A DNA stretch of 64,000 bases, taken from the sequence record PV754031.1; one strand, written 5' to 3'. Positions 14,849 through 62,090 of the stretch are shown here, piece by piece (position 1 is the first letter of the stretch; each line of letters starts with the position of its first letter). Position numbers and translations under genes: made by a program. A model generated the notes under the pieces. That model did not search any database. It was not told where the DNA came from and saw only the letters and a program-made list of their open reading frames with translations.

Positions 14849-14925
14849 TTTAAGGCTATTTTAGTAGCTTTATATTCTGATCTTAGCAACCTAGGTACAA
14901 CGTGATGCAATGTTTAACACACGTA

Positions 14926-15270
14926 ATGAAGTTAGTGGCCGTATTAAGTACGTTGTTATACGTATCAAACCCACTAGCTGCATCGTTGGTAGTTGACGAG
15001 AATTACTGTAATGGTGTTGCACTTATAGCACATGCCACAGCAGAAGCACGTCAGCGTAAAACACCCATTTTACAATGGGAAGAAAACCTACGATCCCTAA
15101 AAGGGTACGGCGTGAAGAACAAAGATAACGTTCTTTACAATGTTCTCCCAGCAGCAATTAAAGAGGTGCACGTTGTGTATTCACGTAGACAAAGCCCACG
15201 TGATGCATACGTTACATCATTTAAAACCTGTATGGATAACAACTACGGTAAAGCTGTGGTTGTAAAATAA
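14926..15270 (+). CDS. secreted/periplasmic two-cysteine protein
   Basis: Signal peptide MKLVAVLSTLLYVSNPLAA; one Cys near each end of the mature chain. Confidence 0.7.
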   Translation: MKLVAVLSTLLYVSNPLAASLVVDENYCNGVALIAHATAEARQRKTPILQWEENLRSLKGYGVKNKDNVLYNVLPAAIKEVHVVYSRRQSPRDAYVTSFKTCMDNNYGKAVVVK

Positions 15271-15305: not shown

Positions 15306-15623
15306 ATGAGAATCTGTGGGTTGCAAATGTATAAAGTATTTGTTATATCAATGATAACACTAACGGCTATATCAACATGTGTAACTTTCATTATTAATAT
15401 AAAAAATCATTATATTCACTGGATGGGTGTTTATAAGGTTAGATATGTATTAGATAAAATGCCCAATGGCATAAGTTATTTTTTCTATCAAAATGCTGTC
15501 CAAGACATTATAGATAAAGAATCATCTAAAATAACAAATCAACATATTTTTACATCTTTTATTTACGATATCAACTCATTGATTATATTAAAATGTAATA
15601 ATAGGGAAACAGCAAATGAATGA
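15306..15623 (+). CDS. membrane-anchored hypothetical protein
   Basis: N-terminal TM helix. Confidence 0.7.
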   Translation: MRICGLQMYKVFVISMITLTAISTCVTFIINIKNHYIHWMGVYKVRYVLDKMPNGISYFFYQNAVQDIIDKESSKITNQHIFTSFIYDINSLIILKCNNRETANE

Positions 15624-16670: not shown

Positions 16671-17579
16671 ATGCTAAAGGTAAAATCATTACTCACTGGC
16701 CATATTCTTCGAGCTACCTATGATTGGTTTCTTGAGAATAACTTCAGAGATATTCTAATTGTAGCACATACTCAATTAGTACCTGATTTATCTGAGGTAG
16801 CTCTAAAGCATGCGAAAGAAGATCACACTATCACTTTCAATATCCATCCACGCTGTGCAAAGAATTTTTATATCAGTGACGAATATATCTCTTTCAATGT
16901 AACAGTAAATGGAGTTGGGGTCAGTATTAAACTTCCTCTTTATGCAGTATTGGGTGTAGTTACACCTATTGATGATAATTCTAACGCATTCTTTGAAATG
17001 CCACTAGTAGATAGATATCTCAATGCAGATACTATTCGTGCAACATTAGAAGGAACTGTTAATAATGTAGTTGACAAAAACCCAGTATTAACTACCGTAG
17101 GTAATGTCACTGAGGTTAATTTTAAAAATAAAGCCGATACCACTAATGGTAAGTTAGTTGTAAGGAATACATCTGAGAATGAGCATGATCAGATGATTGA
17201 AAGCGCCATTAACAGAGTAACTGAATTTAGTAATCCAGAATTAGATGCACATATTAGAGTAGCGGTAACTGTAATTAAACAGAATGCACCAGAATTAATT
17301 ATGGATTGGTGTGAGCGGGTTATTAATTGTACACGTAATGAAAACTATCAGGATAACATCAATGTACTTATGATGGAACTCCTCAGTTACCCTATTTCAA
17401 ATGTGGTTAGTGAATCAACTGTGGACTCGGGTGATAATACATCTAATTCATTTGACAATGATGTAAATAAGATGGTTGAGGATTTCAATAATTCTTCCAA
17501 TTCGCAGGTTATTATTAATAAACCTTCTCGTCCTACCGGTACACCAAAACTCACTGTTATTAAAGGTGGTAAGAAATGA
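16671..17579 (+). CDS. sspB: SspB-like ClpXP adaptor with an extra central domain
   Basis: LRATYDWF...ITFNI...ISFN...IKLPLYAVLGV SspB core; C-terminal RPTGTPKLTVIK resembles the ClpX-binding tail. Confidence 0.85.
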   Translation: MLKVKSLLTGHILRATYDWFLENNFRDILIVAHTQLVPDLSEVALKHAKEDHTITFNIHPRCAKNFYISDEYISFNVTVNGVGVSIKLPLYAVLGVVTPIDDNSNAFFEMPLVDRYLNADTIRATLEGTVNNVVDKNPVLTTVGNVTEVNFKNKADTTNGKLVVRNTSENEHDQMIESAINRVTEFSNPELDAHIRVAVTVIKQNAPELIMDWCERVINCTRNENYQDNINVLMMELLSYPISNVVSESTVDSGDNTSNSFDNDVNKMVEDFNNSSNSQVIINKPSRPTGTPKLTVIKGGKK

Positions 17580-17833
17580 ATGCAACTTTAGCAATTCTTT
17601 TTAGTAGTATCAGTATCGCTGGTTATCAAGCCAATGGTGCATCGCAGTCAACCGCTGAGTTCTCTGACATGGCTACTTGTTTTAGCGCGATTGAGCGCAT
17701 TCAAAAACTAGCTAAAGCAAGTGCTATTCGTAATAATGTAGAGACTGTAAAAATCAGTGATGGTGTTCTATTACGTTATTTTTCTTCTAGTACTAGTAAA
17801 GTAGAACATACTCTAATCTGTGTAAATAAATAG
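17576..17833 (+). CDS. small exported two-cysteine protein
   Basis: Hydrophobic N-terminus; EFSDMATCFSA...LICV. Confidence 0.65.
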   Translation: MNATLAILFSSISIAGYQANGASQSTAEFSDMATCFSAIERIQKLAKASAIRNNVETVKISDGVLLRYFSSSTSKVEHTLICVNK

Positions 17834-26868: not shown

Positions 26869-26886
26869 AATAATTACTTAATATAC

Positions 26887-26906
26887 ACCCTCCCTTCGGG
26901 GAGGGT
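26887..26906 (+). terminator. intrinsic terminator
   Basis: ACCCTCCC-ttcg-GGGAGGGT followed by TTT. Confidence 0.85.
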
Positions 26907-26916
26907 TTTATTTATC

Positions 26917-26953
26917 TTTTTTTGTATTTAAACTATTTAAAAAGCTATATTAC
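26917..26953 (+). promoter_or_regulatory. early promoter
   Basis: TTTTTTTGTATTTAAACTATTTAAAAAGC-TATATTAC. Confidence 0.8.
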
Positions 26954-26986
26954 AAATATGAATTTAATAACCAAGAGGGCAATACA

Positions 26987-27250
26987 ATGACTGAACGTTT
27001 GAAATCCGTATGGTGCGCTTGCAGCTTACTGCGTGAACGCTGGAGACACATCCAAGACATTGCTGTCGGGGATGAACATCATGTCATAGTAAAAAACGAT
27101 ATGCTGATGGTGTTTCGTGGTCAAGTACCGGTAGGTAGCATGTACCGGGGTGACAGTGACCCACTCATCTACGAGGGTGGTGCACTGGAAGAATTTACTA
27201 AAGTTGTATTGGATTTAGAATTCAATACTCGTGGTGAAACCAATAGTTAA
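26987..27250 (+). CDS. hypothetical early protein
   Basis: GAGGG RBS. Confidence 0.8.
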   Translation: MTERLKSVWCACSLLRERWRHIQDIAVGDEHHVIVKNDMLMVFRGQVPVGSMYRGDSDPLIYEGGALEEFTKVVLDLEFNTRGETNS

Positions 27251-27276
27251 TAAAATTAATTTTGAGGTAATTCATT

Positions 27277-27684
27277 ATGAAATATGTAATTGTATTTATG
27301 TTGTCTATTGTAACTATCACTGCTAACTCGGCTGTCATGTACACTAATCGTGATTCATGCATCGAGTTTGTAAAACAGGCAGATGAATTGTTTGTAAAAG
27401 GTGCATCTGTAACTGAAGTGCAAATGAAGACTTATGAAAGGATTCATTATATCCTTAATAACACTAAAGATCTAAAGACCAACCAGTCTAAAGTTGAAGA
27501 ACTCACTGGTCTATTTTACCTATGGTCTAAGGTAGATAAAATGGCAATTGAGGCAAGTTTGCCACGTGCAACAAATGCTGCTAAAGTCTATAAGACCACT
27601 CCTGAGAAATTCATCATTGATGGTTATTTCCAGCGTTGTGTAGCGGCAGGTGCGTTTGAAGCAAAACCACTTACTCTAAAATAA
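27277..27684 (+). CDS. periplasmic two-cysteine protein
   Basis: Signal peptide ...TITANSA; RDSCIEF...QRCV. Confidence 0.8.
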   Translation: MKYVIVFMLSIVTITANSAVMYTNRDSCIEFVKQADELFVKGASVTEVQMKTYERIHYILNNTKDLKTNQSKVEELTGLFYLWSKVDKMAIEASLPRATNAAKVYKTTPEKFIIDGYFQRCVAAGAFEAKPLTLK

Positions 27685-27696
27685 TGGAGGTACAAC

Positions 27697-28056
27697 ATGC
27701 TTAAGAATTGGCTATTATTCCTTTTCCTGCCAATCCTGTCCATTGCATGTCAGCCTGCCCACGCTGTAGAAGTGGGTATTACTAAGAAATCATGTAATGT
27801 GGCAGTAAATCTTTCACAAAAAGCAACTGAGCTTTATGATAAGAACCTATCCCAATTTGAGATAATGATGCAGTTAGATATGATCTCTCGTAAGGATATG
27901 GATGACTTAGAGTTCTATGCAGGTACCGTATATGCTAAATTAAACTTAGTTGATATTCGCGTAAATAAACGAAAAGGATTTACCAATGGAGCTATTCTAG
28001 ATAGGCTAGCTGAAAACTGTGTTGAAGCAATTGGTACTAAATTTAACTTGGAGTAG
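27697..28056 (+). CDS. periplasmic two-cysteine protein
   Basis: Signal peptide ...QPAHA; KSCNVA...ENCV. Confidence 0.8.
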   Translation: MLKNWLLFLFLPILSIACQPAHAVEVGITKKSCNVAVNLSQKATELYDKNLSQFEIMMQLDMISRKDMDDLEFYAGTVYAKLNLVDIRVNKRKGFTNGAILDRLAENCVEAIGTKFNLE

Positions 28057-28059
28057 AAT

Positions 28060-28854
28060 ATGGTTAGTATTTATATTGTCATTATACTCATGGCTATGCT
28101 AGCTGCATTGACATGTGGTAATTTGGTAGATAGCTGGGTAAGGCCAGCTATTCTAAAGTGGTTAAATGATGATGTCGCTATTCATTTCACCAATGCTACC
28201 TGGATGGTTGGGGGGATCCCTAATAGTGTTCCAATGCAACTAGGTAAAGCTGTTTGGTTACCCAAATACGTGGGTGACGGAATACGTCTTTATATCACGG
28301 CTGATGAAATAAAATTTGGATGGAATGGTAAAGAAAAAGATGCTTTAGCACGAGCCATTGTTGAAGTTATCTTTATTGGTAAAAATCCAAATAGTAAACT
28401 TCTTGAAGTAAGTATTAAACCTATTTGGTTACACCCTTCTATCCAAAAAGAAAGTTTCTATTTAATGTTTGATTGGGAAAAGCTTTATACAAAAAATGAA
28501 GAGATGCGTATTTGTTGGAAGACAATACGTCACACTTTTTTCTATGGATTTCTAGGTTTGCTATTTGGCGGTAGTGCCAATGCAGATAACCTTGTATTAA
28601 CTGAACGTGGATGTGACCAATATGAAGCAATGGTGAGAACTATTGCATCTAAAGCTTATATTGGATTAGATCCAGTTATGGGTAGGGAATTCATTATTAA
28701 TGATCCTGATATGTTAAATGCCCGTGAGAAAGCACAACGTAATACCCGTATCATTATCGATATGGTGGAAACTGGACAAGAACCCAAAGACATTGCATTA
28801 TGGATGAATACTCAATGTAAACAAGAAGCAGTGTCAAATTTAATCAAACAGTGA
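28060..28854 (+). CDS. membrane protein fused in frame to a signal-peptide two-cysteine module
   Basis: N-terminal TM; internal MRICWK...GGSANA signal peptide from 28504; RGCDQY...TQCK. Confidence 0.75.
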   Translation: MVSIYIVIILMAMLAALTCGNLVDSWVRPAILKWLNDDVAIHFTNATWMVGGIPNSVPMQLGKAVWLPKYVGDGIRLYITADEIKFGWNGKEKDALARAIVEVIFIGKNPNSKLLEVSIKPIWLHPSIQKESFYLMFDWEKLYTKNEEMRICWKTIRHTFFYGFLGLLFGGSANADNLVLTERGCDQYEAMVRTIASKAYIGLDPVMGREFIINDPDMLNAREKAQRNTRIIIDMVETGQEPKDIALWMNTQCKQEAVSNLIKQ

Positions 28855-28867
28855 AAAAGGCATAGAT

Positions 28868-29251
28868 ATGAAAAGAAATTTTGAAGATGATCACGTGGTA
28901 ATGGCAGTGGAAGTATATGAGAAACTGAAAGAAGCTGCTGCTTATTCATTACACTCTTCTGAAATTAGTAAGATCGAACGACATATGCGTAAGTTTAATC
29001 GTGTTCAACGCGATAAACATATTGAAAATATGCGTATGGAAATGCTTGAGAAACGCGAGGCTATTAGAAAAGCAAAATCTTTCTTTTCTCAAAATGCCGG
29101 TAAAATTGGTTGCGTAGTAGATAGGCTTGTCAAAGTATGTGAAGTGTATAAAATGGATAAGTCTATGGTGGTTGTTGAGTTTCTCCAACATAAATCTAAA
29201 ATTAAAGTTCCAGTAAATCCTGAAAAAATTACTATTCTTACCATTAAATAA
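28868..29251 (+). CDS. hypothetical protein (coiled coil plus possible SH3-like C-terminus)
   Basis: Co-directional ORF; GKIGCVV...VVVEF...KVPVNPEKI. Confidence 0.75.
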   Translation: MKRNFEDDHVVMAVEVYEKLKEAAAYSLHSSEISKIERHMRKFNRVQRDKHIENMRMEMLEKREAIRKAKSFFSQNAGKIGCVVDRLVKVCEVYKMDKSMVVVEFLQHKSKIKVPVNPEKITILTIK

Positions 29252-29268
29252 ATGAAGAAGGATTTAAA

Positions 29269-29724
29269 ATGAAAAATGTAATTGCAGCAGCTTTCGCTGG
29301 TCTCATTGCCATTACCGGTATCATGTTCAATACCGCAATGGCTGAAATCAAGATTGGTAAAAAAGATGCTCAACTCACTGTGCAGTCGTGTGCAATGGTT
29401 GAAACCATTACTAAACAAGCTGTATTTCGAATGAGTGAAGGTCATAGCGCAGATGAAGTTGGTGTGCTTATGCTCAACAACTCTGCTAAACTCAAAGATG
29501 AGTTGGATACCAATAATTGGATTGCGTTAACATTCGTATTCAATAGTCTTAATAAAATCAATAATGACCTTAACAGTAAAGAGATCCATGATTATATCCG
29601 TAGTCAAGGTTACAATGTGACTACTCCTAATCTGGCAGCTTTTATCAGCGGGTATTATGGCAATTACTGCATGAAGCATATTGGTGAGAAATTCACTCAC
29701 ATGGTAATTGTTGAACTTATTTAA
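29269..29724 (+). CDS. periplasmic two-cysteine protein
   Basis: Signal peptide ...NTAMA; QSCAMV...NYCM. Confidence 0.8.
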   Translation: MKNVIAAAFAGLIAITGIMFNTAMAEIKIGKKDAQLTVQSCAMVETITKQAVFRMSEGHSADEVGVLMLNNSAKLKDELDTNNWIALTFVFNSLNKINNDLNSKEIHDYIRSQGYNVTTPNLAAFISGYYGNYCMKHIGEKFTHMVIVELI

Positions 29725-29756
29725 TTCATATCGAATACTTTCAAAAGGAAAATAGG

Positions 29757-30134
29757 ATGAAATACGTCTTCTCGCTCATTATCACTATGGTAGCAATGTC
29801 GGTTAATGCACAACCCGTAACCGTGTCATCTTGCTACGTGCTGCACAGCTTGGCAAAGAATATGGTTCAATTCTACACTAATGGCGGTGAGCCATTGGAG
29901 ATGTATGCAATACTGCAAGATGAACTATCCATTGCCATAGATAAAAACCAGAGTGATAAGGCACTCGCTATTAATATCGCATTGGATAATGTCGATGTAA
30001 TATACCAAAATCTCACTGATCCCGCACTTAAGCTTTTGGCAAAGAGCGAGGGAAGTGATCTTGGTGAGATGCTGACTGAAAAACTCAGTAATGGGTGTTT
30101 CAATATAGTCGGCGAGGAGTTGTATGATAACTAG
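29757..30134 (+). CDS. periplasmic two-cysteine protein
   Basis: Signal peptide ...MSVNA; SSCYVL...NGCF. Confidence 0.8.
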   Translation: MKYVFSLIITMVAMSVNAQPVTVSSCYVLHSLAKNMVQFYTNGGEPLEMYAILQDELSIAIDKNQSDKALAINIALDNVDVIYQNLTDPALKLLAKSEGSDLGEMLTEKLSNGCFNIVGEELYDN

Positions 30135-30363
30135 AATCATCCTAATTGTTGCATGGGTATGGGTAATCTCTCTTATGGGAATGATTACGTATGTTCTTTA
30201 TGATACGTATCAATTTCGTAAGAAATTAGAAATGCCTGTTGTAGAATGGGAAGATAAGGCGAAGGACACTCCTGTTAAGAAGTGTCCAGATGAAGTATTA
30301 TTCGCTGAAGACCCAAAGGATGGCAAACTCAAAATGGGATGCCCTGAGAGTTATAAGAAATAA
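30124..30363 (+). CDS. membrane-anchored protein with periplasmic Cys pair
   Basis: N-terminal TM; KKCP...MGCP. Confidence 0.75.
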   Translation: MITRIILIVAWVWVISLMGMITYVLYDTYQFRKKLEMPVVEWEDKAKDTPVKKCPDEVLFAEDPKDGKLKMGCPESYKK

Positions 30364-30365
30364 TT

Positions 30366-30385
30366 AGAGGACCTTCGGGTCCTCT
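30366..30385 (+). terminator. intrinsic terminator
   Basis: AGAGGACC-ttcg-GGTCCTCT followed by TTTT. Confidence 0.85.
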
Positions 30386-30445
30386 TTTTAACCGACTGGA
30401 CGGTTAAAACTAGGTGGGATAAATTAAACTATTTGAGGAAATCTA

Positions 30446-30553
30446 ATGCAACTTAGTAATGAACTTTTCTATGTGGGTATGGTAGCTGTATCAATGTCAA
30501 TCGGTATGCTATTTAGCTATATTTACCACACTCATAAGAAAAAATATAAATAA
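30446..30553 (+). CDS. 35-aa membrane peptide (not in track)
   Basis: [35 protein letters not shown]; GAGGA RBS. Confidence 0.6.
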
Positions 30554-30562
30554 AGTCATAAA

Positions 30563-30582
30563 CCCTCTCCCAAAGGAGAGGG
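30563..30582 (+). terminator. intrinsic terminator
   Basis: CCCTCTCC-caaa-GGAGAGGG followed by CTTTT. Confidence 0.8.
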
Positions 30583-30585
30583 CTT

Positions 30586-30617
30586 TTACATTAAATTTTT
30601 TTTGAAATCTATATTAC
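30586..30617 (+). promoter_or_regulatory. early promoter
   Basis: ATTAAATTTTTTTTGAAATC-TATATTAC. Confidence 0.8.
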
Positions 30618-30656
30618 ACTAATACAACATTAAACTATTAAATAGGTAATTAAAAA

Positions 30657-61676: not shown

Positions 61677-62090
61677 CTACATTATATCTCGTGTACCATC
61701 ATTCATTTCAACAACAGTGACTTTATCACCAACCTTTGGTTTTTCATTGGTAACTGTTTGAACCATGTACTGCTTGCCATCTGTATTAACAATCAGTTTA
61801 CATTGAAATGTTTCAGTAGCACTAACATTATTACCGACTGCGCCGCCTGCGGCACCACCGATTAAACCACCTACCCAACCTCCAGATTTACCAAAGATTG
61901 CTCGACCTAACACAGCGCCTGCGGTGGCTCCAACCGCACCTCCAACAGTAGTGCCGACAACACTACTATCTTTAGCAACTAGCTGACATTCTGAATGTGC
62001 AATAATACCATCTGTAGTTGATTTTACTTCAGTTGCTGCAAATAGGACAGTGGACCACATTAAAACTACGAATGCGATAATCTTAATCAT
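61677..62090 (-). CDS. exported glycine-zipper protein
   Basis: Signal peptide; GTTVGGAVGATAGAVLG...GGLIGGAAGGAVGN; C-terminal OB-like GDKV. Confidence 0.8.
   Translation of the reverse strand: MIKIIAFVVLMWSTVLFAATEVKSTTDGIIAHSECQLVAKDSSVVGTTVGGAVGATAGAVLGRAIFGKSGGWVGGLIGGAAGGAVGNNVSATETFQCKLIVNTDGKQYMVQTVTNEKPKVGDKVTVVEMNDGTRDIM

Follow-up and report, generated by a model that had tools for sequence, protein, structure and literature searches.

An early-type transcription unit of a phiKZ-like jumbo phage encodes related, probably periplasmic proteins with a saposin-like predicted fold

The phage phiKZ is the model of the nucleus-forming jumbo phages and a candidate for phage therapy; its effects on the host envelope are almost unknown. 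Here we describe a group of small genes which most likely act in this compartment. The DNA analysed, a stretch of 64,000 nucleotides from sequence record PV754031.1 (hereafter the window), belongs to a phiKZ-type Pseudomonas aeruginosa jumbo phage, and its positions 26900-30400 are 99.9-100% identical to phiKZ and close relatives. Three of the encoded proteins, gp248, gp251 and gp252, are paralogues according to profile comparisons, two further ones, gp247 and the C-terminal module of gp249 (gp249C), probably belong with them, and the fold predicted for gp248 is saposin-like.

Genes and transcription of the locus

The five open reading frames (ORFs) concerned start at 27277, 27697, 28060, 29269 and 29757 and match PHIKZ247, 248, 249, 251 and 252 of the phiKZ annotation, exactly where a first-pass annotation of the window had placed them. 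They are part of the gene order PHIKZ246.1, 247, 248, 249, 250, 251, 252, 253 and 253.1, all of which are annotated as hypothetical protein, and all features of the locus lie on the plus strand. The gene gp247 (27277..27684) combines a signal-like N-terminus with a 116-residue, predicted helical domain (Cys28/Cys121) and is a probable diverged member of the family, as judged from its motif and its matches in the structure database BFVD. It is followed by the core member gp248 (27697..28056), which is assigned through its orthologues and its AlphaFold2 (AF2) model and has a mature domain of 96 residues, the pair Cys33/Cys108 and an extra Cys18. The gp249 gene (28060..28854) encodes a fusion with two transmembrane segments, in which an N-terminal segment and a domain of ~130 residues and unknown function precede an internal signal-like stretch, or second transmembrane segment, from Met149 to the predicted cleavage site (28504..28584, recognized by its charge pattern). 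The module gp249C (28585..28854; 89 residues, Cys185/Cys253) follows and is a probable member by its C-x16-G motif and a BFVD match. Two further core members are gp251 (29269..29724; mature domain of 126 residues, Cys41/Cys134), which is assigned by profile alignment with hhalign, by PHROG and by BFVD matches, and gp252 (29757..30134; mature domain of 107 residues, Cys26/Cys114), assigned by hhalign against gp251 and gp248 and the most acidic of the set (isoelectric point, pI, 4.2).

These genes are framed by clear transcription signals. Upstream, an intrinsic terminator (26887..26906; 8-bp GC-rich stem, TTCG loop and T-run) closes the unit of the HD phosphohydrolase gene gp246, and an exact match to the TATATTAC box, an element of the phiKZ early-promoter type, follows at 26946..26953. 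Early promoters of phiKZ are AT-rich (PMC8244752). Downstream, a stem-loop followed by a T-run (30366..30385) forms the first terminator of the unit and a second intrinsic terminator is present at 30563..30582, beyond which the next TATATTAC box is found at 30610. The Illumina RNA run X11 yields a single contig from 26969 to 30565, which starts 16 nt downstream of the box and has zero depth on both flanks, and in a Nanopore complementary DNA (cDNA) run the depth drops to zero directly past the first stem-loop (from 30372). Most of the region is found in more than 12 RNA-seq runs. RNA contigs cannot prove one transcript and the run metadata are coded; the contig ends match the predicted promoter and terminator signals, and 26946-30582 forms a transcription unit of its own under an early-type promoter, in line with the operon behind an early promoter at 26946 which the first-pass annotation had proposed. 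In the phiKZ-like phage Churi, a gp248 homologue was detected by proteomics 15 min post infection (PMC11849849). The operon lies in the accessory arm of the phiKZ genome, within the orf184-304 region, which according to transposon sequencing consists largely of genes that are non-essential in laboratory conditions (bioRxiv 10.1101/2025.11.23.690004). The 30-base stretches 26883-26913 and 30589-30618 also occur in RNA contigs from other places in the phage genome, and modules of terminator plus promoter are therefore repeated around the genome.

Of the remaining genes of the unit, gp246.1 and gp250 are not members of the family. The first gene behind the promoter box, gp246.1 (26987..27250 in the phiKZ annotation), encodes 87 residues without a signal peptide and is missing from L007, a diverged relative from a public assembly, in which the spacer between gp246 and gp247 measures only ~130 bp. 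The product of gp250 (28868..29251; 127 residues) likewise lacks a signal peptide, gives no family signal by hhalign and is the fastest-evolving of the operon, with 58% identity to L007 and a ratio of nonsynonymous to synonymous substitution rates (dN/dS) of 0.23. The most conserved one is gp253 (30124..30363), a 79-residue protein with a single transmembrane segment and a Cys pair (CP...GCP) in its tail, which is 96% identical to its L007 counterpart, as compared with 58-85% for the others; by the positive-inside rule, this tail may be cytoplasmic. Phabio and HPP-Temi carry small transmembrane proteins with a C-x6-C pair behind their family genes, which have no detectable homology to gp253. 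At the end of the unit, gp253.1 (30446..30553; phiKZ annotation and sequence) encodes a hydrophobic peptide of 35 residues.

Predicted export signals, kinship and distribution

All five members begin with the hallmarks of an export signal, which in gp249 is internal: a short n-region with lysine or arginine (K/R), an uncharged hydrophobic stretch of 13-18 residues and small residues at positions -1 and -3. The predicted cleavage sites, with the hyphen marking the cut, are TANS-A, AHA-V, SANA-D (the internal one of gp249), AMA-E and VNA-Q. Among 112 non-overlapping ORFs of the window, a crude signal-peptide heuristic flagged 18, including the six genes gp247, 248, 249, 251, 252 and 253. The mature domains of 89-126 residues contain two Cys each, the first 8-16 residues past the predicted cleavage site and the second 11-17 residues from the C-terminus, and this number of two is exact in every family mature domain (19 sequences). 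The spacing C-x16-G is exact in gp249C, gp251 and gp252, while gp248 has N at this position and gp247 has its G at x13. The Sec signals with A-x-A-type sites, the early and late Cys and the motif shared by three members, with N or a 3-residue shift in the others, had been described from the first reading of the sequence, and each of these descriptions holds. Export into the host periplasm is, judging from these signals, most likely for the family, that is, for at least three and probably all five members.

The spacing is part of a longer motif, phi-T-x2-3-[SG]-C-x16/13-[GN], which matches these five alone among 180 ORFs of the window (0.25 matches expected in shuffles); as it was derived from the same five sequences, this shows specificity and is no independent test. 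Of seven more distant gp248 relatives that were examined, five (phiPA3, Phabio, HPP-Temi, P0010 and P0011) have C-x16-G and two (D6 and RVTF4) do not. The members differ in charge, with pI values from 4.2 to 8.8, mostly acidic to neutral. Two more small ORFs with a signal-like N-terminus and a Cys pair, 61677-62090 (minus strand, with a long Gly/Ala-rich middle) and 17576-17833 (plus strand), give no family signal.

The membrane arrangement of two members deserves separate mention. The layout of gp249, comprising the N-terminal transmembrane segment, the domain of ~130 residues, the second hydrophobic segment with its SANA-D site and the family module, is kept in L007. Since this second segment has three K/R before it and one after it, the positive-inside rule would put the middle domain in the cytoplasm and the C-terminal module in the periplasm, where gp249C may stay tethered to the membrane or be set free by signal peptidase. 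Met149 is unlikely to serve as a separate start, because the only candidate ribosome-binding site before it, GAAGAG, is poorly spaced and because the fusion is conserved in L007. In gp248, Cys18 stands at the end of the hydrophobic segment, five residues ahead of the A-x-A site. A Cys is found at this position in phiKZ, L007, phiPA3, Phabio, HPP-Temi, D6 and RVTF4 and is absent from P0010 and P0011. Its contexts (SIAC, FVGC, FTGC, MASC and MVTC), set against the lipobox pattern [LVI][ASTVI][GAS]C, make a lipobox at Cys18 possible.

The kinship of the members emerges from profile comparisons, as plain BLAST between them finds almost nothing. Mature domains, with signal peptides removed, were compared by hhalign using profiles built from the window, L007 and the copies of other phages, with five neighbouring genes as controls. 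The pair gp251-gp252 reaches P = 2e-6, its 103 aligned columns keeping both Cys in register, gp248-gp252 reaches P = 8e-4 and gp248-gp251 P = 2e-3 over 94 columns, all of them beyond the best pair involving a control (P = 0.03); gp248, gp251 and gp252 are therefore paralogues on these profiles. In PHROGs, the strong match of each gene is a family of unknown function and of its own length, and gp251 additionally reaches the gp248 PHROG at E = 0.0026. By hhalign, gp247 and gp249C have no significant sequence link to this core: P is 0.03-0.2 for gp247 and 0.003-0.02 for gp249C against the core profile, while the controls reach 0.03-0.055 at best, and the alignments are partly out of register. Against a combined 251/252 profile, gp249C aligns in register at P = 0.02, and a gp247-core alignment is also in register. 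The third gene of HPP-Temi is an orthologue of gp247 (P = 2e-4), and adding it to the profile did not improve the gp247-core link. Of the five diverged paralogues announced by the first-pass annotation, three thus stand on significant alignments, and the membership of gp247 and gp249C, which we infer from the shared motif and from hints at the level of structure, is probable.

The family appears to be restricted to a narrow group of phages. Pfam gives no match at E <= 1 for any member, and PADLOC and PDB sequence searches return nothing. By tblastn, gp247, 249, 251 and 252 are confined to the phiKZ species, and orthologues of gp248 with 25-39% identity occur in phiPA3, Phabio, HPP-Temi, BRkr, phiHQ, D6 and RVTF4. 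HPP-Temi has three members in a row (248-like, 251-like and 247-like), D6 and RVTF4 have two each, and a single one is present at this locus in phiPA3 and in Phabio; in phiPA3 and HPP-Temi the locus is anchored upstream by a conserved gp246. A search with a hidden Markov model (HMM) of the core profile through 1.84 billion representative proteins recovered the three query families, one fragment, two gp248-like proteins of uncultured phages and one spurious eukaryotic match. Because this exhaustive search found no others, the family is, at the level of sequence, private to phiKZ-like phages, with the anticipated variation in copy number, from one to five per phage. A word-indexed protein search found close copies only, plus P0002, which leads to L007, and a scan of IMG/VR found a near-identical contig only. 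Partial gp248 copies of 86-91% identity (P0003-P0006) are filed in NCBI as Klebsiella pneumoniae on contigs of ~250 bp and are probably contamination by phiKZ-like reads. In the otherwise near-identical phage vB_PaePAO1-KEN19, gp252 aligns in two pieces with 89% identity, which suggests an indel or a frameshift. Mentions of gp247-249 in PMC10299810 and PMC10643120 follow the numbering of other phages and are unrelated.

The first-pass annotation had also called the array rapidly diverging, which finds no support at the distance of L007. Between the window and L007, the five members are 69-85% identical and keep all Cys, as compared with 79-87% for neighbouring genes, and dN/dS is 0.03-0.16 for four of the five (synonymous sites are saturated in gp251), similar to the neighbours. 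In this comparison, the family is under purifying selection according to the sequences.

Predicted fold and possible functions

The AF2 model of mature gp248, built from an alignment of eight rows, has a pLDDT of 88 and a pTM of 0.78. It consists of four helices, with a kink in the third, between two short strands, one N-terminal and one C-terminal, which pair with each other, so that it is helical apart from two terminal strands of three residues. In mature numbering, Cys10 falls where helix 1 begins and Cys85 where the last helix ends, and the motif maps to the beginning of helix 1 together with the turn behind it. The Cys pair is thus placed in the model as a clasp of the first and last helices around a helical body, as had been supposed beforehand, and each member would probably form one disulfide.

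Structure searches with this model converge on one fold. In the PDB, Foldseek matched saposin C, saposin A and Na-SLP-1 (E 0.5-0.8; TM-score up to 0.60/0.69), clusters of the AlphaFold Database gave Saposin B-type domains with a probability of 0.87-0.99, and saposin and prosaposin clusters were matched in the ESM Atlas. The model shows the compact arrangement of four to five helices that characterizes saposins, and with independent libraries and methods in agreement, the predicted fold of gp248 is saposin-like. The Swiss-Prot model search found no characterized bacterial look-alike, and Rap1a, Tai4, Ivy, Pli and T4 Spackle are not among the structural matches listed in the PDB searches. The sequences themselves give no such signal: the six conserved Cys and three disulfides of saposin-like proteins (SAPLIPs) are absent, all 19 mature domains having two Cys only, and no member matches Pfam SapB_1 or SapB_2 at E <= 1.

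Within BFVD, the gp248 model matched its orthologues in phiPA3, Psa21 and 201phi2-1 as well as larger, paralogue-type proteins of 201phi2-1, Phabio and Psa21. Two matches belong to one accession series, an entry of 151 residues (TMq 0.74) and one of 264 residues (TMq 0.71; root-mean-square deviation, rmsd, 1.7 A over 85 columns). The model of gp247 is poor because its alignment held only two sequences; it consists of helices throughout and has the Cys in equivalent relative positions, and its best three non-self matches in BFVD are a gp251-type entry, the Psa21 gp248-type entry and phiPA3 gp303.

These results bear on the question of whether the five proteins form one family at all. It could be that gp247, gp249C or both are unrelated exported helical proteins which happen to share a generic layout of signal plus two Cys, as their near-control P values with alignments partly out of register, the low-confidence gp247 model and the presence of a signal and two Cys in other window ORFs would allow. 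We consider this improbable in view of the N-terminal motif with its exact spacing, which is confined to five of 180 ORFs, of the low rmsd between the 264-residue entry and the gp248 model, of the top three gp247 matches in all of BFVD, which are family members, and of the position of the gp247-like gene of HPP-Temi directly behind its gp248-like and gp251-like genes.

The fold may also extend beyond the operon. PHIKZ229 (14905-15270, plus strand) encodes 121 residues with a signal-like N-terminus and Cys35/Cys109, and its orthologues in PS119XW (54.5% identity, 121 residues), BRkr, D6, Phabio and 201phi2-1 make it more widely conserved than the operon members. It has no sequence signal to the core HMM. 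A PS119XW protein of 121 residues matches the gp248 model in BFVD (TMq 0.78, rmsd 2.5 A), which probably makes gp229 another protein of this fold class. The adjoining ORF of 105 residues (15306-15623, plus strand) has a signal-like N-terminus and Cys25/Cys97, and an unnamed BFVD entry of 105 residues (TMq 0.64 to the gp248 model, probability 0.96) is a candidate match for it.

On this basis, we propose that the unit exports phage-specific small helical bundles into the host periplasm, where the capped first helix with its Cys and the last helix with the second Cys would form one disulfide in the oxidizing environment and clasp the terminal helices. A saposin-like fold would make the mechanism of saposin-like proteins the likeliest one, namely the binding or perturbation of lipids and membrane surfaces. 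Possible targets are the inner and outer membranes, each on its periplasmic side, or lipid-linked molecules of the envelope, and the differently charged paralogues (pI 4.2-8.8) may serve different ligands. The benefit would probably be that the infected cell has its envelope conditioned or insulated, for instance against superinfection or attacks on the envelope. We slightly favour such an action on envelope lipids or membrane surfaces over inhibition of the Spackle type, with a rough probability of 0.4, because the modelled fold is the sole positive structural information. In its fullest form, which we regard as doubtful, this proposal would make the proteins private lipid handlers of phiKZ-like phages that act in the bacterial periplasm by extracting membrane lipids or lipid-linked molecules, shielding them or changing their arrangement, rendering the cell refractory to superinfection or envelope attack or allowing the phage to sense superinfection, and would constitute the first viral saposin mechanism in a prokaryotic envelope.

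Several points weigh against lipid handling. Of the three disulfides that are canonical in saposins, no more than one can form, and no SapB family of Pfam is matched. The 151- and 264-residue BFVD entries are equated with gp251 and gp249 by length and accession series only, and the gp247 model (pLDDT 61) is poor. Lipid binding is putative, and arrays of diverged paralogues characterize protein-inhibitor or immunity families no less than lipid binders. The early timing, finally, is deduced from the promoter motif, a single coded RNA run and the proteomics of a homologue.

The arrayed arrangement also suits a tentative alternative of nearly equal probability, in which the paralogues are inhibitors or immunity-like proteins, each clasped bundle neutralizing a different enzyme that acts in the periplasm, such as the tail lysins of superinfecting phages, peptidoglycan hydrolases of type VI secretion systems (T6SS) or pyocins, and thereby providing superinfection exclusion or armour. 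T4 Spackle has the same gross layout, being an early, periplasmic helical bundle with one disulfide (PMC7677548), and a diverged array with variable copy number and varied surface charge would suit multiple protein targets. The strongly acidic gp252 contrasts with the phiKZ lysin domains, which are basic (pI 8.7-9.5). Against it stand the PDB searches, in which saposins rank first and structures of Spackle and T6SS immunity proteins are not among the matches listed, the lack of PADLOC and PDB sequence matches, the missing cognate effector (Pfam finds no hydrolase or effector domain in the operon) and the low dN/dS, which in the single comparison available, that with L007, does not point to an arms race. 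Complex predictions of mature gp252, gp248 and gp251 with the gp181 lysin domain scored 0.00, which bears neither way on binding.

A role as periplasmic sensors or regulators of lysis timing, comparable to the T4 antiholin RI, is very unlikely. Lysis by phiKZ is delayed at high multiplicity of infection (MOI), the putative periplasmic signal and its receptor being unknown (PMC12894885), and proteins detecting superinfection could feed this delay; the members are small, helical and predicted to be periplasmic, and gp249 would span the membrane with a cytoplasmic domain. However, the periplasmic domain of the phiKZ holin is only small and its known regulator, gp143, acts on the cytoplasmic side (PMC12894885), the operon lies far from the lysis cassette (genes 141-144), and one sensor does not need five paralogues. 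Least probable of all is that the proteins permeabilize membranes in the manner of caenopores or NK-lysin, either to help lysis or to attack neighbouring cells. The top match of the wide structure search is indeed a pore-former, caenopore-5, but an early pore-former would be harmful in the periplasm of its own producer, the members are mostly acidic to neutral and not cationic, and phiKZ possesses a full holin-endolysin-spanin cassette (PMC12894885).

Significance and comparison with known systems

In the part of the genome examined, at least three, probably five and perhaps seven phiKZ genes encode one exported fold. The literature searched yielded no paper linking saposin with phiKZ or jumbo phages, and a saposin-like protein in the bacterial periplasm was found neither there nor in searches of reviewed proteins; this saposin-like, Spackle-like class of exported phage proteins is a family not yet described. 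If lipid binding is true, it would represent a new route by which phages manipulate the envelope, using a saposin-like protein in the bacterial periplasm, and if inhibition of lysins or effectors is true, a Spackle-like exclusion array on a different scaffold. The family, being small, soluble and dispensable under laboratory conditions, can be easily tested.

Among known systems, two kinds of periplasmic protection proteins had been suggested as analogues, and neither likeness is borne out by the structural matches listed. Rap1a/Rap2a and Tai4 are small helical proteins of the periplasm, frequently arranged in arrays. These T6SS immunity proteins do not appear among the PDB structural matches listed, no amidase or other effector gene lies alongside the present genes, and the family described here is phage-encoded. 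The lysozyme inhibitors Ivy, PliC, MliC, PliI and PliG, none of which is among the structural matches listed either, are periplasmic but consist mainly of beta-sheet and reach into the active site with a loop (PMC7677548), whereas the family here is predicted to be periplasmic and, in the gp248 model, helical.

In terms of fold, the closest counterparts are the SAPLIPs (saposins A-D, NK-lysin, caenopores and Na-SLP-1/Ac-SLP-1). The Cys pair of the phage family is placed in the model like the outer saposin disulfides, clasping the first and last helices. In contrast to the six Cys of the SAPLIPs, the phage family has two, it adds terminal beta-strands, which are paired in the model, and it is phage-encoded with the bacterial periplasm as its predicted target.

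In terms of layout, T4 Spackle (gp61.3) comes closest. It is an early periplasmic protein of 75 mature residues, forms a compact helical bundle and inhibits the tail lysozyme gp5, and its disulfide connects helix 1, at 7 residues into the mature chain, with the C-terminal region (PMC7677548). Spackle is single-copy in T4, as opposed to the array found here, and shows no sequence or fold match among the matches listed. Both are products of early genes of large lytic phages with a cleavable signal, a small helical bundle and one disulfide (predicted in the present case), and by this analogy of layout T4 Spackle is the nearest functional analogue of the phiKZ family.

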